Below are positions 6,013 to 47,850 of a stretch of 64,000 nt of DNA, piece by piece (position 1 is the stretch's first letter; every line of letters starts with the position of its first letter). A program made the translations under genes and the position numbers. Location: positions 18,352,001 through 18,416,000 of the forward strand of contig NC_047063.1 of the NCBI RefSeq assembly GCF_902459465.1, written 5' to 3'. The DNA comes from Asterias rubens (lineage: Eukaryota). Under the pieces are notes generated by a model. It saw only the letters and a program-made list of their open reading frames with translations, did no database searches and was not told the DNA's origin.

Positions 6013-22132
<16,120 letters not shown>

Positions 22133-22860
22133 TGCGAGTGACCGAGTGTTACCTAATTATGATGACTCTACTGGTTGTTCTCTATCCCCCATTTGATGAG
22201 CATCACTACTGTCAGTATTCCGTTACCTTTCTTGTCTGTGCACGTATCACGTTTCAATCCATCAACTGTGATTTACTGCAATGCTTCTGCGTATAGATGA
22301 GCCTAAAACAAAAGGATTCAGGAGACTACATTGTTAATGTTGGCTATCAGATAGAAAAGATGCACTTAGCCTAATGGATCAACCCCATTTACATCAATCA
22401 TAGTAATATGATTTCTTCTTTCACTAATATATTGAAGGTTACAAATATCCTTACTTATTTTGAAGAGTGGTTTTCTTATTTGTCCACCACTGTATAAAGA
22501 CACTTACATTTAAAATATTTGTTTAGCTCCCTGAGGTGTTTGTAACTGTCAAACCAGTTCTCGAGGCGAAGTCAAGGGCAAGGGAACTTATTAGTCAAAT
22601 TTCAAGTTCCAATACCGGTGGAGAGCTATTGACTGTCATGCTTTCCACCCGACATAAACCATGTTATGTTTGTTTAACTCTATCTCATACTTCTCTAGTT
22701 CAGCATAATTGAGGTCAGGAAAATGCTGATTGACATTTACGTGTGCTGCTACTTTTAGCCTAATGTAGGGTAAGAAATTGGTCCATTACTTAAAAATGTA
22801 GCTCTGCGCACCTTGCAGGAACAAAATTACTCAGCACTTTGAGATGCCCATCAGGTGTGA

Positions 22861-27202: not shown

Positions 27203-30200
27203 ATGGCTTCCTTGAAAGATATTTGTGACGGGCTTCCAGTGGATCCTCTGCCTCCTCCCAAACCGAGAGATTCTAACACGGCACATGCACCAACCAGGGT
27301 GCCCAACCTTACACCAGAGGAAGAGAGGGTGAGTGGTGAATGAAGAAAGAGATTCAGTGACAACTGACATTGATTGTGTTCAATGAGAAGATTCAATTCA
27401 TTGCCATTGGATTGTGTTGTATTGTGTTTTACAGAAGTTATGCAACGACAACGTGGCAACCTATGGTGATTGGTGGGTTTCGTGGGGCGTGATGTGGGTG
27501 TTCCCATGTTTTGTTTGTGATTGTCTACACGATCGCGAGGAACTCACATTTGAATGGCTTTTCATGATTGACTATATGAGTGACTCTTCTGAGCAATAAC
27601 TTTCCGTATGGCGCCACCACTTTTTCATTCGATATGAAATAATCTAACTTTAATTCACCTCTCAATGAAATATATTCCTCAATGAGGCCTATCCCTGTCT
27701 TTTGTAAACAAAGTGAATTAGTCATAGTGCTGACGCGCCATGCGGAAAGTTATCCAGACTTCTCCTACAACTCTATGAGGTTCGTTCTGCTACCGTCGCT
27801 TCCACGAACCTCATACATAGAGTGACATAAACAAAATCCTGTTTGAAGCTTTTTGCACTTCAGTTTATACATTTACAATTACAAACATGCCGATCGATTA
27901 TTATAGGTTTCTCTGACTGATCTCGCAAAAATTGTTATTATTTTTGTTTTTTAAAGATCTCTCTATAGTGTTTTCTGTTCTCTCATTGAGTGTTGCGTTG
28001 GTCTAGAAAATCCACTCCCTTATTAGATCCAGTAACTGAAGCGCTGTGCTCTTTTTTTTTCTACGAAATTTGTCATTATCCGTCGTACGACCGATAATGA
28101 CAAATTTTGAAGAAAAAAAAAGGAGTGTAGCGCCCAAGGTACTGGATCTTCTCACTTATAAAGTCCTGCATAAGTTTTTAACTGTCTTTTTTAAGTGTCT
28201 ATTTGTTCTGGCATCTTAATCTTGAATACCTTATCTAGGTAGATACATGAGCTATAGACTATAAATGTTGTCACTGTAGTCTCGAGAAAAAACCCCAGTG
28301 GTTTTAATAAAACCATTGCATTTGATAAAAAACATAGTGACCACTGTTCCCTCAACCTCTCCCTTTTGATTTTACAGCTTGCTTTGCAGAATGCTTTGCG
28401 ATATTTCCCATCGGAGCTCCATGACGTCTTGGCACCAGAGTTTGCTCAAGAATTGAGACAGTATGGCCACATTTACATGTATCGCTTCCGTCCTGACATT
28501 GAAATGAGGTACTGTTTTAGGCAAGACTTTATACTCAAACCATTTACATATTTTCAAATGTATATTAGTTTAAGATCATTTCTCCTTAAAGATGTGAAAT
28601 GTTTAAATTTTTTTGAGTTAATTTATTGGTCATGCCTGGTTTTATATAAAACATGGTTTAAATAACACAATATTATTCATTGCAAAAAAAGAAAAGAAAA
28701 GAAAAGCAGACAGATACTCAAGTTAAAGTGCACTTGATACATTATAAGTTTACTTAACATCCAGAAACAAAACAAATCACACAGTTCATGAAAAAAGGTG
28801 AAGAACTGATGACAAAAGCCGTGGATTTTCACTTTGCATTTACGCATGTATTGTGAGGTCAGACTGGCTCATCAACCATCATAAAAAAATATAGAAAAAA
28901 ATTAAAAGATTGTCCACCTTCTTCAAATGTTGGGGAACTTTATTCCCTCAGTGTTGCTAATTTATACTAATGAAAGCATTTGTGCCTCACACAAATCATA
29001 TTATTGAAAGCATTGTTATTATTTTGAAATTGACTATTGATTTGCTTTTTATTTCAGGGCTTACCCTATCAATGAGTACCCATGTAACTCCAGACAAGCT
29101 GCCGGCATCATGCATATGATTATGAACAACCTCGACCCAAGGGTGGCTCAGGTTGGAAATTTTCCTTCAAATTGTTTTAAATAAACACATATTTTGGTTG
29201 TGAGCCCAAAAGCTTTGAGGAGTTAGGTTATGTTATAAAAGGGAACACAGACAGTCATTTTCCAGAAATGTTTACATCTGTCCAATTTCCTCCCTGTTTC
29301 TTGTTTAGTTTCCTCATGAGTTGGTAACATACGGTGGCAACGGACAAGTCTTTTCCAACTGGGCCCAGGTACTGTATCTTTACATTTCAGTGATACTAAC
29401 TTATTTAGTCAGGGATAAAGAGTATTATTTGGTTTAACCCGTACACCAAGATCTGTAAAAAAGATTCCACAGGCATGTTTCTCGATTGGGATTCAAAGCA
29501 ACGACCTTGGCCTGGGAGCTAGAGGCAGTTCAAATTGCATAAATCAGCTGGTACTGTAACTATGCTAAACTTCGCAATAAAATAATATCATTTTGGTTTT
29601 CCCCATACACTGATGTCTACTTTAGAAAGGGTAGGTGGGTTGGAATCACACCCTAATAACATACCTGTGATTATTTATCCCGAGGGTACTGAAAATGTCA
29701 GTCAGAGTCAGACCTCGCTGTTTCCCACACTCTTGACTTCTCTACCACATCAAATACAAACTACAAAAGCTAAAACACAGTTCAGATCTGCTTTTCAATG
29801 TGTGTACATGTAGTTTTACCTGTGTTTGTAAATCCGTTTGCATAAATGTTGTGTTAATTATTACTATTATTATTATCACTTTTCATTGCGTTATAGTTTC
29901 GTCTAGTGATGCATTATCTATCTGAGATGACGGATGACCAGACTTTGGCGCTCTACTCAGGACATCCAATGGGTCTCTTCCCTAGTCACATCGATGCACC
30001 TAGGGTGGTAGTCACTAATGGCATGGTATGAATAATGATACTGGCCTCGATTGGGAAAATCAAATTTTGTGTTAGAAGTTAGCAACCCCAGTCACCATGT
30101 TAACCGAGCCACAGTAAAATCAAGCGGGCAGCAAAAAATGAGTAAAATTACACCTTGTTGAATTGGTCACATATCACAATTTTCCTGAACAGCAAAACTC

Positions 30201-33200
30201 ATTAAAAAAAACAAAACACACATTTTGGGAAATCAACATCTTTGCGTTTTTTCGATGTTATCAATAACATAAAAAAAATTCTCCAAGTTTTGAGTCATAA
30301 AAGGTCATAGTTTCATAAGTACACTAATAAGAGCTAGATAATATTAACAGATTTATAGTTTTTACAGTTTTCACGTACAGCCAATCTTTGCTTTGTCAAA
30401 TTTTACACTCAATACATAACAGTGACAAATATAAAGGCTTAATGGGAGACTTTCTGGGACGATAGAGGGCAGCAGACTTACCGGGTAAATCCATTGTTCT
30501 CAGAATTATGCGCATGTTCAGAACTACGTAAACAATGGAAATTTACCCGGTATGTCTGCTGCCACCTAGCGTTGGAAAGTCTCCTATTGTTTTTGCGTTT
30601 TCAGTAGGATATAAAATATATGACCTAGATAAGTAGATTGTACGACCTAGATTGTACGACCTAGATTGTACGACCTAGATTGTACGACCTAGATTGTACG
30701 ACCTAGATTGTACGACCTAGATTGTTCGACCTAGATTGTACGACCTAGATTGTGCATCCATTCAGACCTCAAATAAAGCTCAATTAAATACAATATTGTA
30801 TGGAAAGTAAATTGTAATAATCATTGTGTTTTTATGATTACAGATGGTGCCCAATTATTCATCCCGTGAGAATTACAATCGCCTCTTTGCTTTAGGTGTT
30901 ACTATGTAAGTTCTTTATATTTTAAGACTTATCTTTCTCAAGTCAAGTCCCTTTTCTAAGGCACAGTATTTTTTGTTAAATGTCAGTAAGTGATAACCAC
31001 AACTTAGGACATTTGTATACGTTTGCTCAGTGGTTCTTTCACTGCCTTCCACTCCTCTTGTGGGTCCCAGTCTGAATCCAAGACTAGAGCCTTGCATGTG
31101 GATTTGGTGTCGGTCCCTATCTGATTGTGTGTGTGTGTGTTTTCCCCAGCTGGGGTTTCCGTCCCACATCTAGAACTGACATTTCATCATCATCTTCTCT
31201 ACTTAGGTTTCTTTAGGCCTCAGGATCACAGTCACTTTGGAGTGTCCCTTGGTTTCAATACAGGCCCCTTCCCTCCTACCCCCTTTTGTCTCCCTATTCA
31301 TTGTTTACCCCTTGTTTTTTCCTGTGCGCTTTCTGACTCTCTCTAATAATTAATTTCCATAATGACTGCTTACGTTACATTTGTTCATGTTTAATGTGTT
31401 GTCATTATATAAGCCTTAAAGAAAGACTCTGCTAGAGGGTCCAAACGTCAGGTCATGAACTATTTTTTGCATAATTTTAAGAAGAATCAAGTAGAATAAT
31501 TTTTAAAACTCTTTGAAGTTGATTAAGTGACTGTTTTAAATCTGTTTTCTGTATTTACTGGTCAGGTATGGACAGATGACTGCTGGTAGCTTCTGTTACA
31601 TTGGTCCTCAAGGCATCGTACATGGAACAACGGTATAAGAATGTTTACTATTTGGTTTTACTAATGACAGCGATGTGTGTACTGTAAAGCACTGTTTATG
31701 CAGCACTTTCCTGAGTCCAGTGAAAAAAACCTCAAAGGCAATACTCGGGTGGGACTCAACCCACCACCTTTGCAATTCTAGAGCAATGTCATACCAACTA
31801 GACTACCAAGGTCGCCGGTAGCTAGAGGCAGTTTGAATCCTATGTTTAAGCTCAATCAACCATTTAAAAACCTGTACTTGCTTTCTCTGTTTTCAAACAT
31901 CAAGTTTTGAACTCGCAGGATGGAAACTACATTTATTTTTTTTTATTGTAAAAAGACTGCAGCATTTCAAGCAAAAATATTTCAAGGGAAGTTTCTTAGC
32001 ATGACCATATACCATGTGAAGTTATGTGTAAATCTGTGAACATTTATATTTTTTAAATTATACCAATAAAGTGCACATTGTAGATCTACCATTAAAATAA
32101 TATATTTCTTCTACTCATGACAGATTACCGTCCTGAATGCTGGTCGCCAGCAGCTGGGTACCAGTGATCTGAGAGGTCGGGTCTTTGTGACCTCTGGCCT
32201 AGGAGGAATGAGTGGCGCTCAAGCTAAAGCTGCAGTTATCTGCGGATGCGTTGGAGTCATTGCTGAGATTAGTAAAGAGGCACTGATGAAGAGATATAAG
32301 CAAGGGTAAGGTCTTAAAGGATTTGGCTACCTTTTCAAAATTTTCATAGATTTACATTAAACTTACAGGGTTTGAAGATAATGATAGTGGAAAGCTTCCC
32401 TTCAAATATTACTTACTGAGGTGCTGTAGTTTTTGAGAAATGAGTAAAACAATGTCATAAAAATACGTTTGTAAATGCTTAAAATAATTTTCGTCTCATG
32501 AGACGAAAACTATTTTTATGACATTGTTTTACTCATCTCCCAAAAACTACAGCACCTCAGCACGTAGTATTTTTAGGGAAGCTTTCTACTATCATTATCT
32601 TCACACTGTGTAAGTTTAGTGTAAGTTTAGTGGACATTGTGTTTTTTGTCCTTCAAAAGTTACATACACCCTTTAAAGGCACTGGACACTATTGGGTATT
32701 ACTCAAAATAATTGTTAGCATAAAAACCTACTTGGTAACGAGCAATGGAGAGCTGTTGGTAGTATAAAACATTGTGAGAAACAGCTCCCTCTGAAGTAAC
32801 GTAGTGGATTGATTGACTGATTAATTGGTTGATTGATTGATGGACTGATGATTGATTTTTTCTTTTACTTTTCAAAACAAAACAGTTTATTCATTTACAA
32901 AATATACAGAATTTACAAAAACATAGAAAACTAGAAAATTAAATTAACTTAGCTGTAACAATATAAGGTCGGTACATCTAAATTAACACTTAAGCAAATA
33001 CATTAGAACAGCATAGTAGACATGGACGAAAAACAAAATTTCAGAATAAATTTAATGTCATCAGTGATCTGGAATATGTTGCAGAGATCCCATTATTGAT
33101 TGATGGATGGATGGCTTGATTGATTGATTGACGAACTTGCTAATTTATTAGTTGACTTAAAATATCTTAATTTTTTGTTTAAGCTGGTTGATGGAGATAA

Positions 33201-36200
33201 CAGATAATCTTGACATCTGCATTGAAAGAATCAAGTAAGTAAAGTCACATTATTTGTTTATATATATTTATTTATTTATTTATTTATTTATGAACACATT
33301 TTTGTTTTAGATAACTGTTAGAATTATACGTATGATATTACACCATTAATTTGCATAATTGTTAAAACTAAATTGCTCCCCAATGTTTGATTCTTGACAG
33401 ACGAGCTAGAAAGGAGAGGACACCCCTCAGCCTGGGCTACAATGGGAACATAGTGGACATTTGGTAGGTATAATTGATTGCTTTAAAACAGGTGCAAATT
33501 GAACGGGGATCGATACGCATCATAACTATTGATGGTTCCTATTTGTTTTCAAGATTATCGGTACCCCAATCACTCATTTGTCACCCTTGTAATGTAAATA
33601 AATTTAATTAAAAATTACTATCACATCACAGAAATCCATAACAAATTTCGGTGTGTATATGTGTATAGGATTTGAGCGATGCATGGTGAGGTATCAATTT
33701 ATTTGGTTTGCGGTAACACCATATATATATATTATTACATATAGGAACTATTTTTACTTCTAAATGTACTTTTTCGGCATGCTTGGCTGTCAGTCCAGTG
33801 AATTAACAAACCAGAATATATACCGTAGCAGAGTAGAATTTTCGGAATCAGGAGACTTCTCAGTCCTGGAAAGGACTGTCTTGCTTATTAACTATACGTG
33901 GGCGGAAGGTGGAAAATCAGCCAGGGGTGGGTTTAACAAAGAGTTAAGACTAGTCTTATCTTGAGTTAGGGTGACTTACTCGGTTTATCTGAGGACTTGC
34001 AATACGCTTTTAATATCTCCTAGGACTATTCCTATGTTAGGACTAGTCCTAACTCTTTGTGAAATCGACCCCAGGACTACGACTTAGATTTAGTGAATCG
34101 AGGGGACCTCTCTTGAACGTCACTAATGTCAATGTTTCGACTAGCTTGCTCTATAGTCATCGTCAGGAGACTGAAGAGTGGGAGAAATGTGGGCCTAAGG
34201 TTATTGTAATAAACCGAGACATCTATATTTCAATATGAAATTATATAGACTCTTCCATTTAAATAAAGGGGGATTTTAATTTGATACTGGGCTATTCTAT
34301 TTTGAAACACAGGGAGCGTGTTGCAGCAGAGTATGACAGTACAGGAGAGTTACTGGTTGATCTAGGATCGGATCAGACCTCTTGCCATAACCCCTACAAT
34401 GGAGGCTACTACCCAGTCCAGCTTAGCTTCGATGATGCCAATGTCATGATGGCTGCAGATCCTGCTAGATTCAAGAACCTGGTCCAGGAAAGGTACCCAT
34501 TCCGCCCCCCCCCCTAAAAAAAAAAAAATAATAATAATAATAAAAAAAATCCCTTTAAACTTACAATAGGAATTGTTAATCAGACATGTTAGTTCAGTAG
34601 GTCAGGATTTTCTGAAAACTTAAAATTTTCCCAACTGAGCCATTCATTTTGTAATTTGTAAGTGACACAGCTTGTGTCGTCAGATTGCATTTACACATAG
34701 TTCTTCATATACAAAAAGAAGAGACATTTTTAGATTTTGAACGCATACACTTTTGTAAGACCTCTTTAATTTTCAAGTAAGAAAAACCACAAGCTAAACT
34801 GACTGGATAAATCTTAAGTATTTTTGGAATGAACAAAGAATGATTGCCAGCACTGAACCAACTGATACATTAGTTTTGTTATTTGTTTTGGACACAGCTT
34901 GCGTCGTCAGATTGCTGCCATCAACAAGCTGTCTGATCGAGGGTTGTATTTCTTTGACTATGGGAATGCCTTCCTGCTAGAGGCCAGTCGAGCAGGTCGG
35001 TTCAAGAGGAATTTTTGTTTTCCTGATTTAAGGTCATCAATTTTGTAGATGTCTTAGTTTTCTTCAGCTGCACTACGCATCTGGAACTCTCTACCACTTT
35101 ATCTTAAATCTTGTCAATTCAAATCTCTTCTCAAAACTTATCTGCTCAAAAATTAAACGGCAGTTTAAGAACTCGTCGCTACCCTTTTATTTCTTTATTA
35201 AATTATGATGATTTTTGTAGATGTCTTAGTTTTCTTCAGCTGCACTACGCATCTGGAACTCTCTACCACTTTATCTTAAATCTTGTCAATTCAAATCTCT
35301 TCTCAAAACTTATCTGCTTAAAAATTAAACGGCATGTGATGATATTATTTTCTTGGTAGGTGCTGATGTGATGAAGGAAGGAGATCAAACTGGGAATCGG
35401 TTCAGATATCCATCATATGTTCAGGATATTATGGGGTAAGAGATAAGCTTTAAATACGCTTAGATCTGTGTTTCTTACTACCCGAGTGAAAGACGGATCT
35501 TCAAAGTTTGAATCAATCTGACTTAGTTTCCTGAGCCCAATTTCATAGAGCTGCTGTAAGCACAAAAATTTGCTTAGCGTGAAATTTCTTCCTTGATTTA
35601 AACAGGATTACCAACCAAGTTTCCATCTGTTGCATATTGCTTGTTCAACTGGTGTTCAGCTGTTGTTTGCTTATCCGGAAAATCACGTGGAAATTTGGTT
35701 GGTTAGCAGCTCTATGAAAGTGGGCCCTGTTCATGTTTGTTGTGTTGTCATTTAGCCTACAAGAAAGACGTCTGCTATGGTCAAAACGTCAGGCCATTAA
35801 AAACAACTATTTTTTGCATTTATACCACAGGTCCTTTTGGACGTTGGTAAGTTGTTTGCAACAGCTAATTCTATTTTCTTAATCTGAATTGCTATGCAAA
35901 GATGTCACAATACAAACCACTATGGTAATACTGACAACTCATCTTGAGATGACTTTTAGTGCTTTGTGAATTTGATTCCTGATTGTTGTCTTTATCTCTA
36001 CAGCGATATATTTTCTCTTGGCTTTGGTCCTTTCCGATGGGTGTGTACATCGACTGACCCAAATGACCTGGCCACAACGGATGACATTGCAACAACTGTC
36101 CTGGAGGACTTCATCAATCAAGGAGGTAGGGAAAGTCTCCCTTTCAAATTATCTTGATCTTAATTCAGTTGGTAATGGGTGACTTTTGGGACGCTAGGTG

Positions 36201-38590
36201 GCAGCAGACTTACCAGGTAAAATCCATTGTTCTTGGTAATGCGCGCATGCTCAGAACTGCATAAACAATGACAGTTCACCTGGTAAGTCTGCTGCCACCT
36301 AGCGTTCCAAAGTCTCCAATTGCAAGACATCATTCTGTAAGCAAGCAAAGTTTTAAAGATTATATTTTATATAGCGCTGGATGTGACATTACATCTACAT
36401 CATAATGCTGTGATTTTTAAGCCTGTTACATTAATAAAAAATTGACCTATTAAAGATCAAATGGCCACTTGTGGTGATAGCAGTGATAAGGAAAACTATG
36501 GCGGGTACAAACTATTTTTATTTCATTTTAGAATTAAAACATCAGTAGGCACTGAGAATGTAAAAACATATCAACTCTTTCTTCGATGCAAGAGTTACAA
36601 ACGTTTAAATTAACTTGTCAAGAATTTCTTGTGACTCAACTTTACAAAAAACAATATTTGTAAAATGTTTTGATTTGACTGGAACTGATTGATGACTTTA
36701 TTTGAATTGTCAAGAATTAGCTTCTGGATTTAGAATGTCTTAGATTTGTGAAAATATGAATTGGTTATAACCTGCATTTCTTGTTTTTGTTTTTCCAGTT
36801 CCCGAGACAACCAAGCAACAATACGAAGACAACATTCGCTGGATAAAGGAAGCTAATAAGCATAAGCTGGTAATATCTACTTCCTATTTACCTCAACCGC
36901 TTGTCATTTGCACCCCTGCTCTCTGATAATGAGAGTTGAATGGCATTTTTTAAAATTAAATAATACCCTACAATAGAATACAAATTGTCTTTATATATCG
37001 TCATTTCATCAATACATGTATCACAGCGGTTTGTGATGATATACAGCAAAAGAAACATGGCAATAATTATACAAAATTGCAAATTAAAATCATAAACAAC
37101 CAAACAATCATTGTCAGAAGAGGTGTGGTTTTAGATGATTCTTGAAAATATGAAGTGAATCAGCAGAGTGCAGAGATTGGGGGAGACTATTCCTAAGTTT
37201 GGGGGAGACTATTCCAAAGTTTAGGGCGACAAAGTTGAAGGTTTTTTTCAGCAGCTGATGCAAGAATTAAGGTTGTGTTTTTTAATTTATGATTGAATTT
37301 TATTTATTATTCTTATTATGAGGAACCTTACTATCTCCTCCCTGGTACCCTAAGGTGGTTGGTTCCCAAGCACGCATCCTCTACTCCGATCAGCGAGGTC
37401 GTATGGCCATCGCAGCCGCTTTTAACCAAGCAGTCAACGATGGCAGGCTACATGGCCCGGTGAACATCAGCAGAGACCATCACGACGTCAGCGGGACAGA
37501 CAGTCCGTTCAGAGAGACTTCAAATATATACGATGGATCTGCCTTTTGTGCAGGTAAAATGGATACATCGTTTAATTGCAACATTGCACAAACTTTGTAT
37601 CTTGATTTTATGCCGTTTCGCACGGAAATGCTCCATCCAAAAATGTTGCATCTCGGCGCAAACTTTTGGGGTTTTTCATCTGGGCTATTTTAAGCGAGAC
37701 ATTATGGTTTTGACAATTTTAAAACTTACGGGTAACATAAGTGCCGTTTTAGAAGACTGTTCCATAGTGCCGAAACACCATGTTAAAACATTTGGCTGTT
37801 GTGTGTATGCCGAACACTACAGATGTGGTATAGACACTGCAACAAATGATAACTGCAGTACAGCTCTGCAGTGTACAAAGGTTGCACATCTAATTCATAT
37901 AAACACTGTTTTTTTTTTATAAAAACATTTTCTGTTTTTTTCCTTGACAGACATGGCAGTCCAGAACGTGATCGGAGATTCATTCCGAGGTGCTACGTGG
38001 GTGGCTCTACACAATGGGGGAGGTGTCGGATGGGGTGAGGTGGTCAACGGAGGCTTTGGTCTGATGCTGGATGGATCAGAGAGGGCTGGAGAGAGAGCGA
38101 AATCCATGCTAGCCTGGGATGTCAGTAATGGGGTAAGTGGGGTGTAGTGTTGGGGTGGGGGTGGATTCTTATAGATTTTTGTGACTTCTGTGATTCCTGT
38201 AAGATTCTTCAAGGGTTTGTTTTCGTCAACGAAAGAATACTTCCACACGTTCCACACCTCTACTGTTTAATTCATGGGGATTTCAAGAGTCTTTCAAACT
38301 AAATAAATATCCTCAAAACGATTTTACAATCTGAAAGTTCTCTACTGGCCAAAAAGGAAATTGCTAGTCCCATTTTTCAGGATTTTTGCTTTTCACTTCC
38401 TTGCAATCTCGCCCTGATTAATACTCTACTTTTTTGTTCTTAAAATCCCAAGGTGGCCCGTCGGAGCTGGTCAGGCAACACTAAAGCCCAGGAGACCATC
38501 TGCAGAGCCATGCAGGGCAATAATAAGCTGAAGGTGACCCTGCCGCACAATGTCCAGTCTGACGTACTGGAGAGAGCCTTCAGAGACTAA
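27203..38590 (+). CDS. UROC1: Urocanate hydratase (urocanase), complete, 18 coding exons, 676 aa
   Basis: Exons 27203-27328, 28378-28508, 29058-29151, 29309-29368, 29897-30025, 30844-30905, 31566-31632, 32124-32305, 33184-33234, 33401-33463, 34313-34492, 34898-34995, 35360-35435, 36004-36125, 36799-36869, 37355-37553, 37951-38132, 38453-38590. All introns are GT-AG and phase-compatible, total 2031 nt. Motifs: LALQNALRYFP, MYGQMTAGSFCYIGPQGIVHGT, VFVTSGLGGMSGAQAKA, DLGSDQTSCHNP, SRDHHDVSGTDSPFRETSNIYDGS, WVALHNGGGVGWGEVVNGGFG. Confidence 0.98.
30444..30584. mobile_element. Palindromic MITE (family K) with CTCF-like motifs in its TIRs, UROC1 intron 5
   Basis: TIR gggagacttt...gatagagggcagcagactta / tatgtctgctgccacctagcg...aaagtctcc; second copy at 36177-36317. 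Confidence 0.8.
30634..30753 (+). repeat. 14-bp minisatellite (TAGATTGTACGACC) x8.5 in UROC1 intron 5
   Basis: Eight full units, one with a single A>T change, and no spacers. Confidence 0.95.
32314..32676. mobile_element. MITE family C inserted 8 nt downstream of the UROC1 exon 8 donor
   Basis: GG|gtaaggtc then ttaaaggatttggctacc...tacatacaccctttaa. Confidence 0.85.
32673..32805 (+). mobile_element. MITE family A, left part, sharing a TTAA with the preceding family C element
   Basis: ttaaaggcactggacactattggg...ctgaagtaacgtagt, then breaks into (gatt)n. Confidence 0.75.
33922..34074. mobile_element. CWG-flanked MITE family E (Harbinger-like), rich in ttaggac/gtcctaa; other copies at about 8421-8570, 19277-19420, 55302-55480, 55478-55583, 57091-57250
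   Basis: cag|gggtgg...gaaatcgaccc|cag, 3-bp CWG flanks and G-rich TIR ends. Confidence 0.75.
35041..35332 (+). repeat. About 120-bp direct duplication in UROC1 intron 12
   Basis: ttttgtagatgtcttag...aaaaattaaacggca at about 35041 and 35213, one mismatch. Confidence 0.9.
36177..36317. mobile_element. Palindromic MITE (family K), UROC1 intron 14
   Basis: gggtgacttttgggacgctaggtggcagcagacttacc...ggtaagtctgctgccacctagcgttccaaagtctcc. Confidence 0.8.
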
Positions 38591-38732
38591 ACCAGACTGA
38601 CACAATCTCCTCTACATCCATCCCTCTACATTAGCATCAAAACTAGGGCAACATTTCAGGGGGGCACAAGGGGGAGTGGGGAGGCACCATTTTTCTTTGG
38701 GGGCCCCTTTCGGCAATTAAAACTGTAGTTTC

Positions 38733-38930
38733 CGTACACTGGACACTATTACTCAAAATAATGATTTGCATAAAAACTGACTTGGTGATGAACAATGGAG
38801 AGTTGTTGATAGTATAAAACATTGTGAGAAACGGCTCCCTCTGAAGTACAGTGTAACCTAGTTTTTGAGAAAAAGGTAATCACTCAAATCATAAAAAACA
38901 TCAGGTCTGAAGCCTTTTATTATGTGCCTC
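38733..38930 (+). mobile_element. MITE family A-related fragment about 140 bp after the UROC1 stop
   Basis: cactggacactattactcaaaataat...cattgtgagaaacggctccctctgaag. Confidence 0.7.
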
Positions 38931-39919
38931 CTTCACGTTAGGCCACTAATTAACATCCACCCCTAGATTGAGGCCTCTAAAGTGCCACTTTATTTTATTT
39001 AGAGCAGAAAATGGGGGTTATATTGGGGAAAACAACTGTTGTTCTTAATTGGGGATGGGGAGAGGATGTCTTTGTATTCACCAATAAGAATATTCAATTT
39101 TTTTCTTTATTTCATATTATTTATGATTGGACCTTACTTAGGGCGGTCTGATTGGTGTGTATTGGTTATCTTTCCTTGTCTTCCACCTCTAGAACCCCGC
39201 TTCAAATCCCACGGGGGGCACCATGTGGATTGGGTTTTCAGATTAAAGGTTTTTAATTTTCAGGTAGCCACTAGTCTCTTCCTTTGACCAATAGTCTATG
39301 TGGTGATAGGTACATGTAAATGTATTTAAAGGATAAAACTGTGCCGGCTTAGTATTATATAGTTTCTGAAATTCAACAGTTTGGTTTGGGACGGATGCCA
39401 TTATTTGAATCGTTCTAACGTTGGTGATAATGAAATTTAATGGTTTGCTCAGTAGTTTTACTTTATATCCTGCACTGAAATAAGAAATGTATAAAACACA
39501 AATAGAGGTAGAGATATTCTGGGTTTAGTTCATGGAGTGTGACTTCATTTTTTTATTGACTTTTTCAAGAGTTAAAACTAACAATAATGTCTGTTTAAAA
39601 AACAATGTTATGTCAGAACGGCAAAGTCTAGCTGCATATCTCTTGGTTACTTTTTCAGATTTTCAATCAAAGCCTGTTATGTTACTTTATTGATTCTTTC
39701 TCACAAGCTGTAAATTCTTCCGATATAAAGTAACTATGGAAGGAAAGCACTGCCTTAAATTCACAGACTCTGGAGTCTTGGGTTCAAATCCCAACCAAGC
39801 AGCCTGTGGATTTTGTTTCTGCAGGCAGGATTTGGAACACTTGAGTTTGAAATAGGGACAAATACGGTTCTTCTGCATCCCTAATCCAACAAAGTCATTA
39901 CAGAGTAGGACGAGCTGCT

Positions 39920-40299
39920 GCAGTGGACACTATTGGTAATTACTCAAAATAATTATTAGCATAAAACTTTACTTGGTAATGAGTAATGGGGAAAGGTTGG
40001 GGGTATAAAACATTGTGAGAAACGGCTCCCTCTGAAGTGACATAGTTTTCGAGAAAGAAGTATTTTTCCACGAATTTGATTTCGAGACCTCAAGTTTAGA
40101 GTTTGAGGTCATGAAATCAACCATCTAAAAGCACACAACTTCGTGTGACAAGGGTGTTTTTTCTTTCATTATTATCTCGCACTCTTCGACGACCGATTGA
40201 GCTCAAATTTTCACAGGTTTGTTATTTTATGTATATGTTGAGATACACCAAGTGAGAAGACTGGTCTTTGACAATTACCAATAGTGCCCAGGTCTTTAA
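39920..40299 (+). mobile_element. MITE family A, near full length
   Basis: gcagtggacactattggtaatt...aattaccaatagtgcccaggtctttaa, with an internal gagacctc/gaggtc hairpin. Confidence 0.85.
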
Positions 40300-41870
40300 T
40301 GCAATATGTGGTGTCGAAATGGCTGATCATTTTTGATATAGATTTGAATAGCGCAATACCCAGAGTTATTTAGAACAGGGTGTTATATTGGCCGTGCAAA
40401 ATAGGTTTATATCACCTTTTGTCGCTAGTGAGTTGACCAAACAGAACCTTAGATTCCTATTTGCTTGAAGAAACACAGTGCTTACAAAAAACAGGGTTTC
40501 GGTTAAAATTGATTTTGTGAAAATCTCTTTAGACTTTCACAGATGTATGTTTCAGGTTCTTGTGTTTGGTGTAATTGTAGGAGATTAAAAATCTATTTTA
40601 CGAGTCAATGACGAGTTGCCTGATTTTCCTTATTTATCTGTTGTCAAGAAATGTTTAAGGTAAACAATAGAGATATATAAAATGGCATCATGTTTATCTC
40701 CTATTGTTTTAGACAACAACAAACTCTTTTTCTGGAAAATTGTAAATGTTGAAGATACAGGGGGTAGGTGAGATAAGAGAGAAATGGGGTTTGGGGGGGG
40801 GGGAAAGTAAAGGTTTCACAGAAAAAAACAAAAACACTTTGCCAGAGGTCGATTACCGAGAGGAAGCATTTGTGGGTAGGGGAGGGGTGTGGGATCAGAG
40901 AGAAATGGGGGGGGGGGTGTTAAAGTAAATACCGTTAGTGATCATTGATATGAATTTTAAAAACTTTGTTTTCTTCTCTGCAAGAAGGGGTGGACATTTC
41001 CAGGAATTAAAGGCCAATTTCTTTTAACAAATTTATCACAAAATTTCAAATGACACAAATTTTTATTACATTTCCACCATTTTATTCAAACACTCTTTTC
41101 AAACCATTCCACACTCTGAAACAATAAACAAATTGAATGGGTTATTTTTTTTTTACTGATTAATGCGTTAATTCTTTAATAATTTTTTTCCCAAAACACG
41201 CCAAGACCACTACATTATTAACTGTTTTACAGTTAATATTATAATTCTAAATTAAACATTTCCTTTGTTCAAAAACACGCAAAAATCCACTACAAATACA
41301 AACTTGGATTTGTAGTGGATTTTACAGTTAGTGGTGGAGCTTTACAGTTAATATCATAATTCTAAATTAAACATTTTAACGGCAAAAGCTTAAACAACAA
41401 CAATTCACTAAAATTTTTGCAAAAAAAAACACAATATTTTTTTCTCTCTCTCAAATAAGTTCTTTAGATTGCCCTTCCAGCACAATTTTTTATTTGGTCA
41501 ACTAGTGTAACAATGAGAAAACAATATTACGCAATATCAGTTTATTAATTTTGACATTTTAAAAAGCTTTATTTCTATGGGTTTCCTACACCACTTCCAT
41601 GAATAAAAAGGTATAACAAAACTAAGGAAAAAAAAGAAAAAAATACAGCACAAAAAAACAACAACTGGGAAACCAAGAAGACACCTTCAAGGAAGTTAAA
41701 TACGCTTTGAAAAATATAGGAGAAATATAAAGTGTTTTTTTTACATAAAAAATATAGAGGATTACAGATTGCAAAAAAATAAAAACTACTCCATAAAACC
41801 GAGTATCGCAAGACTATGGTATTGTTGAAAGTTACAACAAACAATGCACTTATTCATTTTGGTTTTACCC

Positions 41871-42075
41871 ATACACCGATGTGTGCTAGCACTGTATACT
41901 CAGTACTTTCTCGAGTTCTACTAAAAAAAAATCACAGGCATATTACTCGAGTGGGATTCGAATTTACAAGCTTTAACATTCTAGAGCAGATGTCTTACCA
42001 ACTAGACCACCGAGACTGCTTGGTAGCTAGGCAGTTTGAATCCTTTATTTTAGCAGAGGGTACCACATTTATGAA
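41871..42075 (-). mobile_element. tRNA-derived SINE-like family; other copies at about 29463-29560, 31677-31850, 51848-51935
   Basis: The minus strand reads ggtggtctagttggtaagaca...gttaaagcttgtaaattcgaatcccac (A-box and B-box-like), followed by a shared non-tRNA body. Confidence 0.7.
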
Positions 42076-42271
42076 TCAATGCACTTATTTCAGATAATTT
42101 AACACCAGAACAAAAAGGAGTGTCCTTGTTTGCCCAAAATGATCAGTGTTAAGAAAAATAACACAATTTCAGTAAAAAAAAAAAGAAGAAAAAAAATAAC
42201 AATGAAAAAGTTTCAGGCAATCCCACCTTGCTGTTTTCTAAATTGTTTGTTTCGGATGCACTGCTGTTGTG

Positions 42272-42570
42272 TGTCGCGGCTGAGTGGTTAAAGAGCACCG
42301 GACTCAAGCTCTAGTATTTCTGATCAGCAGAGTGTGGGTTTGAGTCCCTGTGGCACTTGTGTCCTTAGGCAAGATACTTTACCATTATTGCTTTGTCTTT
42401 CAAATGGGACATTAAGCCAAAGGGGCCGCTATACTAGGAAGGATTGGTAGTACATTTAAAAGAACCAATAATACTTATCAAGGAATAGCAGGGGTTTAAC
42501 CCCAGTGTTTCTGGTTCCCGTAGCAAGCGCCCTTGTTTACAGGTCTCCCCGGGTTTGCAAGCTATAGTGC
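42272..42570 (+). mobile_element. tRNA-headed SINE with a conserved-core-like body
   Basis: gtcgcggctgagtggttaaagagcaccggactcaagctctag...gtgggtttgagtccc, then cttgtgtccttaggcaagatacttt. Confidence 0.65.
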
Positions 42571-42875
42571 TTAAAGGCAGTGAACACTATTTTTAATTAC
42601 TCAAAATAATTATCGGCATAAAAACTCATTTGGTAACAAGTAATGGGGAGAGGTTGATAGTTTAAAACATTGTGAGAAACGGCTCCCTCTGAAGTAACGT
42701 AGTTTCCGTGAAAGAAGTAATTTTCAGTGAATTTGATTTCTAGACCTCGAGTTTAGAATTTGAGGTCTCGAAATCAAGCATCTGAAAGCACACAACTTTG
42801 TGTGATAAGGGTGTTTTTTCTTTCATTATTATTTCGCAACTTTGACGACCAATTGAACTCAAGTTTTCACAGGTT
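42571..42875 (+). mobile_element. MITE family A, right end truncated at the HAL 3' UTR
   Basis: Begins ttaaaggcagtgaacactatt and stops at ttttcacaggtt, 16 nt from the HAL stop codon. About 80 bp including the right TIR are missing compared with 39920-40299. Confidence 0.85.
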
Positions 42876-42891
42876 CACTCTGGTTTGCGCC

Positions 42892-45800
42892 TTAGTACTC
42901 TCGTTTGCGCTTGGGCATGCGGGGTGTAGAGGTCCCTGATCCCAAGACGCTAGCTGTTGGCGACTGGACGCTGACGTCTTTCAGATGCTCAGTATGGTAA
43001 TGATCCATGTAAGGCTTGACCGCATCCCATATCTAGAAATTCAATTCAAAATGATGTTTATTCCATTCTCCATTGGAGAATAGTTCAAAATGAGAATTTA
43101 GAAAGGTAACAAAATCAAAAGTGCGTATGAGTATACAAAATGTATGTATCGTTAAAGCAAAGAATAAATAAACAATTAGGAAATAACTATGTACAAGAGA
43201 AGAGCGAGAGCATGAGGCGCTTTGAGTAAGCCGAGCTCGTAGAAAACAAAAAACAAACAAACAAACAAACAAACAAACAAACAAACAAACAAACAAACAG
43301 CGAATCACAAAACTATTAGTTCAAGACACAAGAGACGAACAATGACATTACAAAAAATGCTGACAACAAAATACAAAGGATTTAAAATACCAGGCTAACT
43401 GAAGACGACAAATACACAAATACACAAAATAAATTTGGTGCACCAATCAATGGGGGAGAGGGGTTGCTTTGTTACTTGGAGGAAATTATCATAGATTTTA
43501 TCTAGTTGCCAGTTCAGTATTGGAGTCAATAAACACAGGAGCAGAGAGTGGACGGTGTTTAGGATATGGATGAGGATCATTTTATAAGTAACCATAATTG
43601 ATTTGTTATAAACTACAGAAAATTAAGTATTGTTTGAAGCTTTGCATGTTGTGGAGAAATAAGAAAAAACTATAAATAAATAGTAAACTGCGGGTACAAC
43701 CATGTGTAAATCTCATTTGTGGAAGTGTCGGCTCTGAGAAGTGCCGGTTTTCAGAGCCGGTTTTCAGAGCCAACACTCCCACAAAAGCGATTTACACATG
43801 GTTGTACCTGCAAATTTACTACTTATTTATAGTTTCTTCATACAAAAAAAAAATACAAAAATACATCACATAAACTAAAAAACCCAATAATGAACTTATT
43901 CGACAAAATAAAATAAAACGTTAACATTAAAAAAGGCCAGTGATATTACAAGATAAAATAGATCCAGTTACTAACAAATACCAGAGAAAAGGTAGGGTTG
44001 CTTTTTCAAAGAGGAAAATTTGGTTGACCTTTTGGTCCTGCAGCAGCTTTGTTGCAACATCAATGTCAGGAGCCATGAAACGATCCTTATCCCAAGGCCT
44101 GGGGGGGGGGGATAAAATAACGTATTAAAACCAACTTATATTTCATATTTTAATTTANNNNNNNNNNNNNNNNNNNNNNNNNNNNNNNNNNNNNNNNNNN
44201 NNNNNNNNNNNNNNNNNNNNNNNNNNNNNNNNNNNNNNNNNNNNNNNNNNNNNNNNNTTTTGGTTATACACAAAAATGCACTGACCCCTTTTTTTTGGGG
44301 GGGGGGGGGTAAGCACTCTTGCAATTTTTTATCAGACCCCACCTAGGCTAATTCTTTTCACTGTCGTTTTTCTTCGTGAGGTTTATTTTAGGGTTGTAAT
44401 TTGTTGGGGGTACGAAACTGCTAGCTGCCTCCTGACCCACTGCCCTGTTTAACAGGCAACATGTGTAACAACCCAAGTCTCATGGGGAGCAGCAAGAGTT
44501 CATGTAGTCTAGTTAAATAAAGGCTGATTGAAGAAAAAGACACAAATTCCCACTAGACATGATCCATTTGTGTCAAAGGGTTAAACTTTGTCACATTATA
44601 GACACCAGATAACAAATTTGCCACAACCAGCTTGCACAAGCAATTGTGCCATGAAAATTTTTTGTGAATTTGAGTGCTTGATGCAATGTAGGTTACGTTT
44701 GCGGTAACACCATGTGTGTACCTATTTGATTAGGTAGATTATGTTCTTTTGAGACTTTGTCTTGCTTTATATTCTACGAGCAGGGAGTAGATTTTCAGAA
44801 TTTCGGGAAACTTATTAGTTCTGAAAAATTACCTTACATTTAGAAACTACCTTCCGCTCAGGTAGAAGTAAAAAAGCAGGACAGCTCTCTTCAGAGTACA
44901 GTCTCCCAAACTCCGGAAAAATTACTCTGCGGTTGTAGAATATAAACACAAGTTCTCAAAAGAACACAATCTACCTGGCAAGTAGATATACATGTGTTAA
45001 CACAAACCAAATACCTCACCTTACAATGCCTCAAATCCCATGATAAATTTTCATTATTATTTTTTTATAAAAGCGTTTAAAGGACACTTCCACCTGCCAC
45101 TGCTTCAAGCTCTGGTGCTCCTACACACAAAAAAACAAGTTAAATACAAAAATTTTGACTCAAGGTCGTTCCCACTTTTGTTTGCTTCCCTGAAAAATCT
45201 CTTAATAAATTTTTTGTATGAGAAAATATTTTATTTCATATTCTAAAAACAAACAAATATCAACCTGAACATAACTCAATGTGTCAGGGACTGTTGATTT
45301 AGGTCAGATTTTCTTTGTTGAACAAAATTTAAGCCTCAAATAATCCAAGTGCCCCTTGCTTATTGCTTTCATTTGCTGAACTGTCAAACTATTTAAAAAT
45401 GCTGAAGTACAAAGTTTCTATCTGCATACCAAACAAAGAACGGTGACACTCCACCAATTGAACGATTGGCTCAACGTTCACCAATGATTCTTGTTTGAAT
45501 GATTTTCTGTAAAATTCATCAACTCTGAAGCCCCTCTTACCCCTCTCAACTATTATCATTGTGCCACAATGATCAATTTCAGGGCTGAACTTCATCTCTT
45601 ACCATAGTGCCATCATAGTAAATTTCAGGGCTGGAATAACATGAAGGCCAAAACAGTTGCCCTTAAATAATTTAGACTTTGTCAGACTTCACTGATGATT
45701 GTAGGGTGGAGGAAAACATGCACCAGGCAAGAAATGCAAAACCTGGCTCTTCGCTTAAAACTTTTGATTCTAACTCATGTTCCATCTTCAAGATCAAGTG

Positions 45801-47850
45801 CATTGATCTAGACCAGGATTTGTGAGCAGAAAATTTACATTTGTGACCCACTCTGTGAAAATGAGTCACATGTCGCCCAATGCAATATTAAGTTATGGAC
45901 AGTTTAATGTGGAAAATGTATATAACAAATAAAAAAAAAATAAAAAACCTTTAGAACACTTACTTTTAGGCAATAAAGCTATGAATACAACAATTTTGAT
46001 CATACTTATGTCTAATTTGTATCCTTTTGCACAAAATGGTAGTTTAAAATATCGTTTTAAATACTTGTAATTCATTTTTCACAAAAAATGGTGTAGTGGC
46101 TAGCTTCAAACGGGAGTAATTCAGCAACGCGATACACCCCAAAGCTTAGACACATACCAAATTACTGCGGCTGATGTGTTCTTTCCAGCCATGTATATAA
46201 CTCAATTCCTGAAATTGCCTACATCTGACTCATTTTCACAGAGCGGGTCACATTTACACTTACACTAAAGTTGCAAACAATTTTTTAGATACATGTAACT
46301 AATAAAAGCTTGTAGTAAAACAAAAAAGATACACCTCATGTTGAATGGCTGAGGGCGCAGTGTATGATCCATTCCCTTTGTCATTCTTCAGTACTAGAAA
46401 AAGGTTAAATAAAACACATAGTTTTTAGTTGAGAGATGTATGCCCGGAAGTCCAACTTTAGGAGGATAGTCACAAACCAAGAAAACTCCCTCGCTTAAAG
46501 GAACACGTTGCCTTGGATCGGACGAGTTGGTCCATAAAAAGCATTTGAAACCGTTTGTTATGAAATGCATATTGGTTAGAAAGATGTTTAAAAGTATCAC
46601 TAAAAATTGCATGGTTTTCCTTTTACGTCTCGCACTAACACGGTTGGCCATTTAGGAGTCAAAAATTTTACTCCAATAAATGGCCGACCGTGTTAGTCGA
46701 CCAGGGGTGGATTTCACAAAGGTAGTCCTAACTTAGGACTAGTCCTAGGCAATGCTAAGAGATAGGACCAGTCCTAAGTTAGGATGAGTTACTGGTCCTA
46801 ACTTAGGACCAGTCCTATCTCTTAGCATTGCCTAGGACTAGTCCTATGTTAGGACTACCTTTGTGAAATCCACCCCAGGTAAAAAGAAGACCACATAGTT
46901 TCGAGGCATATTTGTGTAGATCATTGTATTCTGCTTTTACAAAATCTTTCTACTCATATTCATAATGCATTTTATAACAAACAGTTACAGAACGCTTTTC
47001 TAAGACCAACTCAACCGATCCAAGGCAACGTGTTTCTTTAAACTCAAGTTATTACCTGCCTCCTTATCTTTGGCCTCTTTTTTATTTAGCATTCATCATG
47101 TGATAGAAATTTCACATCTACTTGTATAAAAACTATCCTGTCAGGGAAAAACTAATCAACATGGCCCAGGTGTCTACCCCAATTGCCTGCACAATTTTTT
47201 TTTTTTTTTTGCTGACCCTGACAGCCAGACAATTTTTTTTCCACCTGCACAAGCACCTACCTAGGACATGATACACCAGGCATGATTTTTTGGCGTTGGG
47301 AAAACAAAAAGTAGAAACAATGATCAATAGAGTGGCTGAGTCCTGACCTAAATGGCCTATGCATGGTGTAGGCTTTAACAGACTTTTAAGGCTATTTTAG
47401 TAACACTTTTTCAGATTTTATTTAACAAAATCAACTCCCCTAATATCGCTGTCAGTGTCGGTCTCAATTCATAACATTTGTAATGACAAATAAACCTTCC
47501 TAGTTTAGACCACAACAGAACAAAAACCTTATATAAAGTTTTACTTTATATTATTATAAAGAAAACCAACCCAAACTAACAATACGTCCTTCATTATCAA
47601 AAAGAAAATACTAACCCGTGACCAAAAACCCTCCATCCTCCACGAGATCTTCAACAAGATCCTCTGGAAACAGCAGACTTCCTCCTGGGGGCTTGCGGAC
47701 CTCCACCACGGCGTCCGTCTTCTTGTTATCGTACCCCTTCATCGAGCGGTATCGACACAAGGCCGTTTCCCCAAGATTCTGGACGGTGAAGCCCGCTGAT
47801 TTGACTGGAATAAGTAGCCATTCTTCACGCACTCGTACGTTGACCTTCAT
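42892..47850 (-). CDS. HAL: Histidine ammonia-lyase (histidase): first coding exon 47850-47616, probable linker exons 46393-46333 and 45630-45603, penultimate exon 44098-44029, last exon 43032-42892; catalytic-core exons missing, probably in the N-gap
   Basis: The first exon MKVNVRVREEWLLIPV...GGSLLFPEDLVEDLVEDGGFLVT is a Par3/HAL N-terminal domain with a phase-1 GTTAGT donor. The 70-nt exon gives PWDKDRFMAPDIDVATKLLQDQK (human PWIKDRFMAPDIEAAHRLLLEQK). The 141-nt last exon gives IWDAVKPYMDHYHTEHLKDVSVQSPTASVL...* (human VWEVAAPYIEKYRMEHIPESRPLSPTAFSL). The linker exons are supported only by splice sites and phase. Confidence 0.92.
43250..43298 (+). repeat. (CAAA)n microsatellite in the last HAL intron
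   Basis: About 12 units. Confidence 0.95.
43660..43840. repeat. Palindromic MITE-like element in the last HAL intron
   Basis: aaactataaataaatagtaaa...gtacaaccatgtgtaaat / atttacacatggttgtac...tttactacttatttatagttt. Confidence 0.7.
44158..44257. other. Assembly gap (exactly 100 N, placeholder of unknown true size) inside HAL
   Basis: Run of 100 N, with HAL 3' exons on the left and 5' exons on the right. Confidence 0.99.
44690..45040. mobile_element. Palindromic family I element; related copies at about 26190-26320, 33676-33920, 52360-53030
   Basis: Shared gcattgcatggtgaggtatcaat...tttgcggtaacaccatgtgt...gtcttgctttatattctac sequence, with inverted ends in this copy. Confidence 0.7.
46495..47041. 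mobile_element. MITE family D carrying a nested family E insertion at 46705-46875
   Basis: Family D termini at both ends. The nested perfect palindrome gggtggatttcacaaa...tttgtgaaatccaccc is flanked by duplicated CAG (46702-46704, 46876-46878). Confidence 0.85.

Follow-up and report, generated by a model that had tools for sequence, protein, structure and literature searches.

HAL and UROC1 in the sea star Asterias rubens: a convergent gene pair that probably dates from the cnidarian-bilaterian ancestor

Pathway gene neighbourhoods in bacteria and eukaryotes

Histidine ammonia-lyase (HAL) and urocanate hydratase (UROC1) catalyze the first and second steps of histidine catabolism, respectively. 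In bacteria, the same two enzymes are encoded side by side in the hut operon, where hutH and hutU are often accompanied by hutI and hutG, and in this respect the operon resembles the gene pair of the sea star Asterias rubens described here. The operon is, however, co-directional, intron-less and transcribed as one unit, whereas the sea-star genes are intron-rich, monocistronic and convergent, and steps 3 and 4 of the pathway are without linkage to the sea-star pair, unlike in hut operons that carry hutI or hutG. Among animal genes, PPAT-PAICS and HADHA-HADHB are same-pathway pairs arranged head-to-head with a shared bidirectional promoter. The arrangement of HAL and UROC1 in the crinoid Antedon and the coral Pocillopora resembles these pairs as far as gene layout goes, but the sea-star genes lie tail-to-tail and, therefore, any co-regulation in the sea star would act via a shared domain or enhancers rather than via one promoter.

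Eukaryotic metabolic gene clusters, such as the fungal DAL and GAL clusters and the plant clusters, physically group non-homologous genes for consecutive steps, as is also the case with HAL and UROC1. To our knowledge, few genes of primary metabolism form clusters in animal genomes, and most gene adjacencies dating from before the cnidarian-bilaterian divergence have been erased. Biosynthetic gene clusters have recently been reported in animals as well (cf. PMC12833800 and the reference to Grayson et al. 2025 therein). The HAL-UROC1 pair differs from typical clusters of this kind in comprising two genes, in belonging to primary catabolism and not to specialized metabolism, and in being far older and more widespread.

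Human UROC1 is located on another chromosome than HAL. The human HAL-AMDHD1 neighbourhood (12q23.1) is similar to the sea-star locus in that HAL lies beside an enzyme of the same pathway, but the human partner is the step-3 enzyme whereas that of the sea star is UROC1, with no AMDHD1-like sequence nearby. The proximity of human HAL to AMDHD1, stated in a preliminary description of the locus, is consistent with the positions of two intronic SNPs, 12:95984993 in HAL and 12:95964751 in AMDHD1, which are 20 kb apart (PMC6524467).

Gene models and continuity of the sea-star locus

The window, that is, the whole stretch of A. rubens DNA that was analyzed, is 64 kb long, and the features identified in it are listed in Table 1. 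Using tblastn with bacterial HutU and animal UROC1 queries, we could identify 18 colinear UROC1 coding exons, beginning with the ATG at 27203 and ending with the stop codon at 38588-38590. The splice-resolved model has a coding sequence of 2031 nt, corresponding to 676 amino acids with no internal stops; all 17 introns are of the GT-AG type, and the protein is 99.6% identical to UROC1 of Asterias amurensis (P0272). Single exons match the Pfam families Urocanase (PF01175; E 1e-19) and Urocanase_C (PF17392; E 5e-27), and the full model can be aligned over its entire length to proteins bearing the Urocanase_N, Urocanase Rossmann-like and Urocanase_C domains. Contigs of 2.1-2.3 kb from public RNA runs end at 38452, one base before the modelled start of the last exon (38453), and thus represent spliced mRNA. 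This model agrees with the complete plus-strand UROC1 of the preliminary description, including its stop at 38590.

Table 1. Features of the UROC1-HAL region, in window coordinates
Feature	Position	Strand	Remarks
UROC1 (urocanate hydratase)	27203..38590	+	complete; 18 coding exons
UROC1 coding exons 1-6	27203-27328, 28378-28508, 29058-29151, 29309-29368, 29897-30025, 30844-30905	+	
UROC1 coding exons 7-12	31566-31632, 32124-32305, 33184-33234, 33401-33463, 34313-34492, 34898-34995	+	
UROC1 coding exons 13-18	35360-35435, 36004-36125, 36799-36869, 37355-37553, 37951-38132, 38453-38590 (stop)	+	
Convergent intergenic/UTR spacer	38591..42891	.	4.3 kb
Very high-copy repeat copies in spacer	38748-38880, 39920-40299, 42568-42875		repeat search and depth spikes
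HAL last coding exon	42892-43032	-	46 codons and TAA stop; AG acceptor
HAL penultimate coding exon	44029-44098	-	70 nt, ...PWDKDRFMAPDIDVATKLLQDQK; AG acceptor, GT donor
Assembly gap	44158..44257	.	100 N; presumably hides HAL exon 2 to antepenultimate exon, ~500 codons including the catalytic core
HAL exon 1	47616-47850	-	ATG 47850; 78 codons and 1 base; N-terminal Par3/HAL domain

HAL had also been taken to be complete, but only exon 1 and the last two exons are present in the assembly (3 of ~20 exons, or ~147 of ~653 codons), and they are out of frame and devoid of the catalytic core. Exon 1, with the donor G/GTTAGT, matches the Pfam family Par3_HAL_N_term (PF12053; E 3.1e-7) and aligns with the first HAL exons, located at the annotated gene starts, of Antedon (44%), Ptychodera (37%) and Nematostella (33%). 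The penultimate exon matches residues 473-497 of HutH as well as HAL of Asterias, Patiria, Strongylocentrotus purpuratus and Antedon, and the last exon is 96%, 57% and 43% identical to the last exons of A. amurensis, S. purpuratus and Antedon, respectively; in all, the three visible exons could be aligned to HAL genes annotated in six species. The minus-strand stop at 42892 given earlier agrees with the translation and the AG acceptor of the last exon, and a 2281-nt RNA contig covers 42864-43032, halting at the edge of this exon.

A protein search with HutH found no match to residues 1-470 anywhere in the 64-kb window, and the exons for the Lyase_aromatic core (PF00221), with its Ala-Ser-Gly MIO-forming motif, are likewise not in the window; these core exons presumably lie in the N gap. 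The visible HAL exons add up to 446 nt, a length not divisible by 3, and hence they cannot splice in frame. The window can be followed colinearly with A. amurensis up to 44157, where the gap begins, but the next 4.3 kb of the A. amurensis HAL gene is unmatched on the right side of the gap; the Ns stand in for no less than 4.3 kb of sequence. Taken together, the end of colinearity, the unmatched 4.3 kb and the frame test indicate that the sequence is discontinuous across the Ns and that the gap conceals most of HAL; the concealed part would be expected to measure roughly 5-15 kb and to contain some 17 HAL exons in frame. The HAL model, truncated by the gap in this assembly, should not be mistaken for a pseudogene.

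Left of the gap, the window is colinear from 18.2 to 44.16 kb with the gap-free A. amurensis assembly at 85-94% identity, spacer included, from an upstream PDZ (MAGI-like) gene via UROC1 and the spacer into HAL. Besides this PDZ gene, an Acatn-like transporter gene is a neighbour of the pair. A misjoin between UROC1 and the HAL 3' exons is therefore unlikely, also at 38.6-42.9 kb, where according to the preliminary description a misjoin would refute the adjacency; that description was also right in placing the HAL 3' exons and UROC1 on one contig. Four very high-copy repeats stop short-read contigs from bridging the spacer, the continuity of which rests on the colinearity with the sister species and not on these contigs. 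One contig from the DNA run reaches 714 nt beyond 44157.

The spacer had been described as 4.3 kb of repeats and UTR, and its size and repeat copies agree with this. The depth of the RNA runs is high in two stretches, 38.8-40.6 kb and 41.07-42.6 kb; between them, at 40.59-41.07 kb, it drops in three RNA runs but not in the DNA run. ATTAAA occurs at 40584 on the plus strand and AATAAA at 41086-41081 on the minus strand. The mRNAs of both genes are present in the same RNA runs. Both genes probably have long 3'UTRs, that of UROC1 extending to ~40.6 kb and that of HAL to ~41.07 kb, and their transcripts appear to end within ~0.5 kb of one another. No conserved non-coding block could be found in the spacer or the promoters upon comparison with Patiria, S. 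purpuratus, Ptychodera, Antedon and Holothuria.

The HAL-UROC1 pair in other animals

We made 12 gene-context look-ups, all centred on UROC1 with 10-kb flanks and covering one or two species per phylum. In 8 of the 13 animals checked, HAL lies no more than 10 kb away from UROC1; these eight represent two orders of asteroids as well as an echinoid, a crinoid, a hemichordate and two anthozoans. Conserved microsynteny, taken as adjacency in at least two phyla, is thus seen in Echinodermata (5 species), Hemichordata (1) and Cnidaria (2), and the adjacency extends well beyond a single species or genus. The genes are arranged tail-to-tail in the two Asterias species, Patiria and Strongylocentrotus, and the direct convergent neighbourhood reported earlier for A. 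rubens recurs in the same order in A. amurensis, Patiria miniata and S. purpuratus, with UROC1(+)/HAL(-) spacers of 4.0, 7.2 and 4.7 kb, respectively. A head-to-head arrangement, HAL(-)/UROC1(+), is observed in Antedon (279 bp between the genes), Pocillopora (770 bp) and Nematostella, the only species with an intervening gene (PIG-F), while the hemichordate Ptychodera has a tandem pair, UROC1(+) followed by HAL(+). The layout of a bidirectional promoter (head-to-head, with starts less than 1 kb apart) is found only in Antedon and Pocillopora and not in the window.

No HAL was detected in the 10-kb flanks of UROC1 in Branchiostoma (amphioxus), which is the sole chordate tested, or in Lineus, Owenia, Haliotis and Holothuria. 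Amphioxus, Lineus and Owenia retain a UROC1-MED20 pair; tblastx searches of the window detected neither MED20 nor other conserved neighbours. No other flanking gene is common to several phyla in the HAL-UROC1 loci compared and, therefore, HAL-UROC1 is the only conserved unit at these loci. Our literature search yielded no account of a syntenic HAL-UROC1 pair in animals.

Sequences similar to HutI/AMDHD1 or HutG were limited to chance-level matches in the 64-kb window and 11 compared loci, and no AMDHD1 or FTCD homologue was found in the window or within the 10-kb flanks of these loci. The locus thus holds two pathway genes, where the common working definition of a metabolic cluster takes at least three. 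An ancestral or repeatedly selected cluster of HAL, UROC1 and AMDHD1 had been proposed, of which the HAL-UROC1 pair is upheld by its wide phyletic spread and AMDHD1, as a third member, is not.

The UROC1 introns are common in position and phase to other ambulacrarians and amphioxus (17 of 17), Pocillopora (16) and Nematostella (14). In the UROC1 tree, the window sequence groups with A. amurensis inside Asteroidea, and the animal sequences are monophyletic (support 100/99). These common intron positions, cnidarians included, and the tree rule out a recent horizontal transfer of either gene from bacteria, in line with the earlier argument against a recently transferred bacterial operon.

Origin and persistence of the pair

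Based on these comparisons, we consider it probable that the complete, transcribed UROC1 and the convergent, gap-hidden HAL form an old microsyntenic pair that descends from the cnidarian-bilaterian ancestor and was kept through local inversions, and we infer co-regulation and a selective cause behind its retention. An ancestral or selectively kept pair is suggested by the span of the adjacency, from asteroids, echinoid and crinoid to hemichordate and anthozoans, and the gene orders most likely reflect that HAL and UROC1 were already neighbours in that ancestor. The ancestral genes were probably arranged head-to-head around a short promoter region common to both, a layout still found in the crinoid and the two anthozoans. 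Local single-gene inversions could then have produced the tandem order of Ptychodera and the tail-to-tail order of sea stars and sea urchins without the genes ever being parted, and the linkage would have been lost in chordates and the sampled spiralians. A common regulatory neighbourhood for the enzyme that makes urocanate and the one that consumes it may have favoured balanced co-expression of their genes. Such co-regulation could not generally operate through a single shared promoter, since orientation varies among lineages, and any constraint on the linkage is dispensable, as 5 of the 13 species do not have HAL within 10 kb of UROC1.

It is possible, though doubtful, that the pair is a neutral leftover of accidental neighbours in an early animal, which were never separated in the slowly rearranging cnidarians and ambulacrarians and are under no functional constraint. 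Consistent with this, the five species without the linkage have apparently lost neither gene, the spacer has no conserved non-coding element in comparison with the other species, and UROC1-MED20, a pair with no evident functional link, also persists. However, all other neighbours have been replaced between phyla while HAL and UROC1 stayed together through at least two local inversions, and we estimate the a priori chance of two consecutive pathway enzymes being adjacent by accident at ~1 in 10,000.

An independent joining of HAL and UROC1 in cnidarians and ambulacrarians, or a repeated one, driven by selection for pathway clustering, is unlikely. The three orientations observed would fit such convergence, and the location of vertebrate HAL beside AMDHD1 (PMC6524467) hints at recurrent recruitment; yet a head-to-head layout with less than 1 kb between the genes is common to the crinoid and the corals. 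Single-gene inversions interconvert all three orientations, and one origin is more parsimonious than at least three.

We regard as very unlikely that the pair is a relic of a bacterial hutH-hutU operon, acquired whole by the animal ancestor or an earlier eukaryote, split into two intron-bearing genes and kept as neighbours for more than 600 million years. If true, this would explain the original adjacency of two consecutive enzymes and also why sea-star UROC1 is 59-64% identical over its full length to the long-form HutU of Bacteroidota and other bacteria. Among the bacterial loci with such a HutU (59-64% identical to sea-star UROC1), hutH is directly upstream of and co-directional with hutU in 17 of 57 informative ones, and hutH likewise immediately precedes hutU on Pseudoalteromonas and Chondrinema plasmids. 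This hutH-to-hutU order differs from the probable divergent order of the ancestral animal pair and is seen in none of the animals compared, which leaves the operon relic without positive support. Finally, a misplacement of the contigs that carry the HAL pieces, or a truncated pseudogene copy at this locus, with the true HAL elsewhere, is scarcely credible: the few, mutually out-of-frame exons around an N gap and the spacer repeats unbridged by short-read contigs are outweighed by the colinearity of the left contig with A. amurensis from the PDZ gene into HAL, the identical gene order in Patiria and S. purpuratus, the location of exon 1 on the side and strand where it would be expected, the spliced 2.28-kb RNA contig that includes the last exon, and the DNA-run contig that extends past 44157.

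The pair that we favour as ancestral would mean that the first two enzymes of histidine catabolism have been neighbours since before the cnidarian-bilaterian split, despite several local inversions. Whether co-regulation is what preserves gene order in animals could be studied on this pair as a compact natural system, in which head-to-head, tandem, tail-to-tail and unlinked states are all open to comparison. The pair also gives a context for the HAL-AMDHD1 neighbourhood of vertebrates.

UROC1 and its surroundings

AT-rich and of animal origin, the window is interrupted by a single run of 100 N. Using tblastn with bacterial HutU queries from plasmid-borne hut loci of Chondrinema and Pseudoalteromonas, colinear plus-strand exons matching HutU residues 48-670 were identified at 28.4-38.6 kb, and animal UROC1 proteins, obtained with one exon as query, extended the model to residue 1. 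The splice-resolved UROC1 has 18 coding exons, with GT-AG boundaries at 17/17 introns, and its 2031-nt coding sequence specifies a 676-residue product sharing 99.6% identity with that of Asterias amurensis, 91% with Patiria, 78% with Strongylocentrotus and 72% with Nematostella, a profile that assigns the window to an Asterias-type sea star. In public RNA runs, contigs of 2.1-2.3 kb are spliced UROC1 mRNA; they stop at 38452, the base just before the modelled last exon.

Features of the window, in window coordinates
Feature	Position	Strand	Remark
PDZ-domain gene, 5' part	~18200-22150	-	upstream of UROC1
UROC1	27203-38590	+	residue 1 at 27203; last exon from 38453; TAA at 38588-38590
tRNA-like sequence	31742-31812	-	UROC1 intron 7; Rfam tRNA, 35 bits, E 5e-4
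Repeat copy	32672-32805		in a UROC1 intron
Repeat copy	38748-38880		
Repeat copy	39920-40299		
Poly(A) signal	40584	+	
Poly(A) signal	41086-41081	-	
Repeat copy	42568-42875		immediately behind HAL stop
HAL last exon	42892-43032	-	stop at 42892
HAL penultimate exon	44029-44098	-	
Run of 100 N	44158-44257		
HAL exon 1	47616-47850	-	ATG at 47850; Par3/HAL N-terminal domain, PF12053, E 3e-7
Acatn/MFS-type (acetyl-CoA-transporter-like) transporter gene	50221-53440	+	beyond HAL
Mitochondrial ribosomal protein L2-like gene	58241-60000	-	beyond HAL
Inverted repeat or foldback	61452-61968		ORFs 61452-61685 (+) and 61522-61860 (-)

Instead of being a gene, the tRNA-like sequence may form the head of a SINE derived from a tRNA. 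In A. amurensis and Patiria, the counterpart of the PDZ-domain gene is large and of PDZ/guanylate-kinase/WW (MAGI-like) type. The region at 61452-61968 is rich in ACAT/ATGT-type simple sequence, and its opposite-strand ORFs begin with an identical 27-residue peptide, pointing to an inverted repeat or foldback some 0.4 kb long.

The visible HAL exons and their junction with UROC1

The preliminary description reported a complete HAL; the gene and its strand and stop codon are real, but only three exons are present, and these, totalling 446 nt, cannot splice in frame. For the last two, HAL matches were obtained in Asterias (89-96%), Patiria, S. purpuratus and Antedon; exon 1 can be aligned to HAL exon 1 of Antedon, Ptychodera and Nematostella. 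HutH residues 1-470 found no tblastn match anywhere in the 64-kb window, and a sensitive tblastx comparison with seven HAL loci revealed nothing beyond the three exons at 42.8-48.0 kb. At the nucleotide level the window is colinear with the gap-free A. amurensis locus starting at 18.2 kb and ending exactly at 44157. The 4.3 kb that follow in the A. amurensis HAL gene, containing exons that match HutH 389-470, have only repeat matches in the window. The Ns therefore stand for missing sequence, which appears to include ~500 HAL codons. HAL is nevertheless alive in the species, given a 2281-nt RNA contig that includes its last exon and halts at the splice edge of that exon.

Short-read contigs cannot bridge the spacer, since four very high-copy repeats break them. 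However, an independent A. amurensis assembly without Ns is colinear with the window, at 85-94% identity, through the upstream MAGI-like gene, UROC1 and the 4.3-kb spacer into the 3' end of HAL, which makes a misjoin anywhere from 38.6 to 42.9 kb very unlikely; the sole large difference is one additional repeat copy in the window. The repeats form a family of ~260-380 bp with an enormous copy number (summed contig depth 10^5 to 10^7 in every run), also found in A. amurensis HAL introns; the copy behind the HAL stop probably lies within the HAL 3'UTR.

In three RNA runs, depth over unique sequence is high at 38.8-40.6 kb and at 41.07-42.6 kb and near zero at 40.59-41.07 kb, where a DNA run is flat. 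Contig depth in the RNA runs is greater in the unique segments 38821-39919, 40262-40579 and 41077-41878 (80, 216 and 406, respectively, in run X10) than in the UROC1 (23) and HAL (49) mRNA contigs, and it climbs toward 40.6 kb and 41.07 kb. Together with the two poly(A) signals, this probably reflects long, 3'-biased 3'UTRs, those of UROC1 and HAL apparently converging to ~0.5 kb apart, though the contigs are strandless; independent non-coding transcripts or DNA carry-over may instead be the source. A search of the spacer for non-coding blocks conserved in Patiria, S. purpuratus or Ptychodera gave none.

HAL-UROC1 adjacency across animals

Loci were fetched using UROC1 proteins of named species with 10-kb flanks, and genes were then called. 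The pair is tail-to-tail, UROC1(+) HAL(-), in A. amurensis, Patiria miniata and S. purpuratus (spacers of 4.0, 7.2 and 4.7 kb, respectively); head-to-head, HAL(-) UROC1(+), in the crinoid Antedon mediterranea (279 bp), the coral Pocillopora verrucosa (770 bp) and Nematostella, where PIG-F is inserted between the two; and in tandem, UROC1(+) then HAL(+), in the acorn worm Ptychodera flava (3.7 kb). HAL was neither annotated nor detectable by tblastn within 10 kb of UROC1 in Holothuria, Branchiostoma, Lineus and Haliotis, nor annotated within that distance in Owenia, whose locus lay outside the tblastn set. Around the pair, no other flanking gene in the fetched loci was common to different phyla.

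The adjacency is real, and its spread over these animals provides good support for an ancient HAL-UROC1 pair, the core of the earlier proposal; any mechanism holding the two genes together is putative. The tight head-to-head arrangement in the crinoid and corals suggests that this form is likely ancestral. Single-gene inversions could interconvert the three orientations: inversion of UROC1 in the head-to-head state would give the Ptychodera order, and subsequent inversion of HAL would give that of sea stars.

The preliminary description had extended the ancestral cluster to AMDHD1, which is unsupported, as no AMDHD1/HutI-like sequence was found in the window or fetched loci; HutG-like sequence was likewise absent from both. 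The human HAL/AMDHD1 neighbourhood is consistent with SNP coordinates in PMC6524467.

MED20 lies tail-to-tail after UROC1 in amphioxus (locus L004, 31870-37202), the nemertean Lineus (L007, 24280-25641) and the annelid Owenia (L014, 43311-45555). This apparent second microsynteny of UROC1 conserved in Bilateria is missing from the window and from the ambulacrarian and cnidarian loci. An LSM gene lies just past MED20 in Lineus (L007, 25783-26950) and downstream in Haliotis (L009, 45161-46603).

Bacterial relatives and origin of the pair

Long-form (~670 residues) bacterial HutU proteins share 59-64% full-length identity with sea-star UROC1, nearly as close as the cnidarian protein (72%). Most are of Bacteroidota origin; others come from MAGs labelled Bdellovibrionota, Acidobacteriota and Patescibacteria. 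A recent bacterial transfer of UROC1 is excluded by shared introns and phylogeny: all 17 sea-star introns coincide in position and phase with those of other ambulacrarians and amphioxus, 16/17 with Pocillopora and 14/17 with Nematostella, and the animal sequences are monophyletic, with the window sequence inside Asteroidea. That the pair is a relic of the bacterial hut operon is a low-probability idea, since hutH directly upstream of and co-directional with hutU, itself found in only 17 of 57 informative bacterial loci, is an order seen in no animal examined. The HAL-UROC1 pair, for which we found no description in the literature, joins the gene pairs whose members are linked by function and have stayed together over deep evolutionary time.
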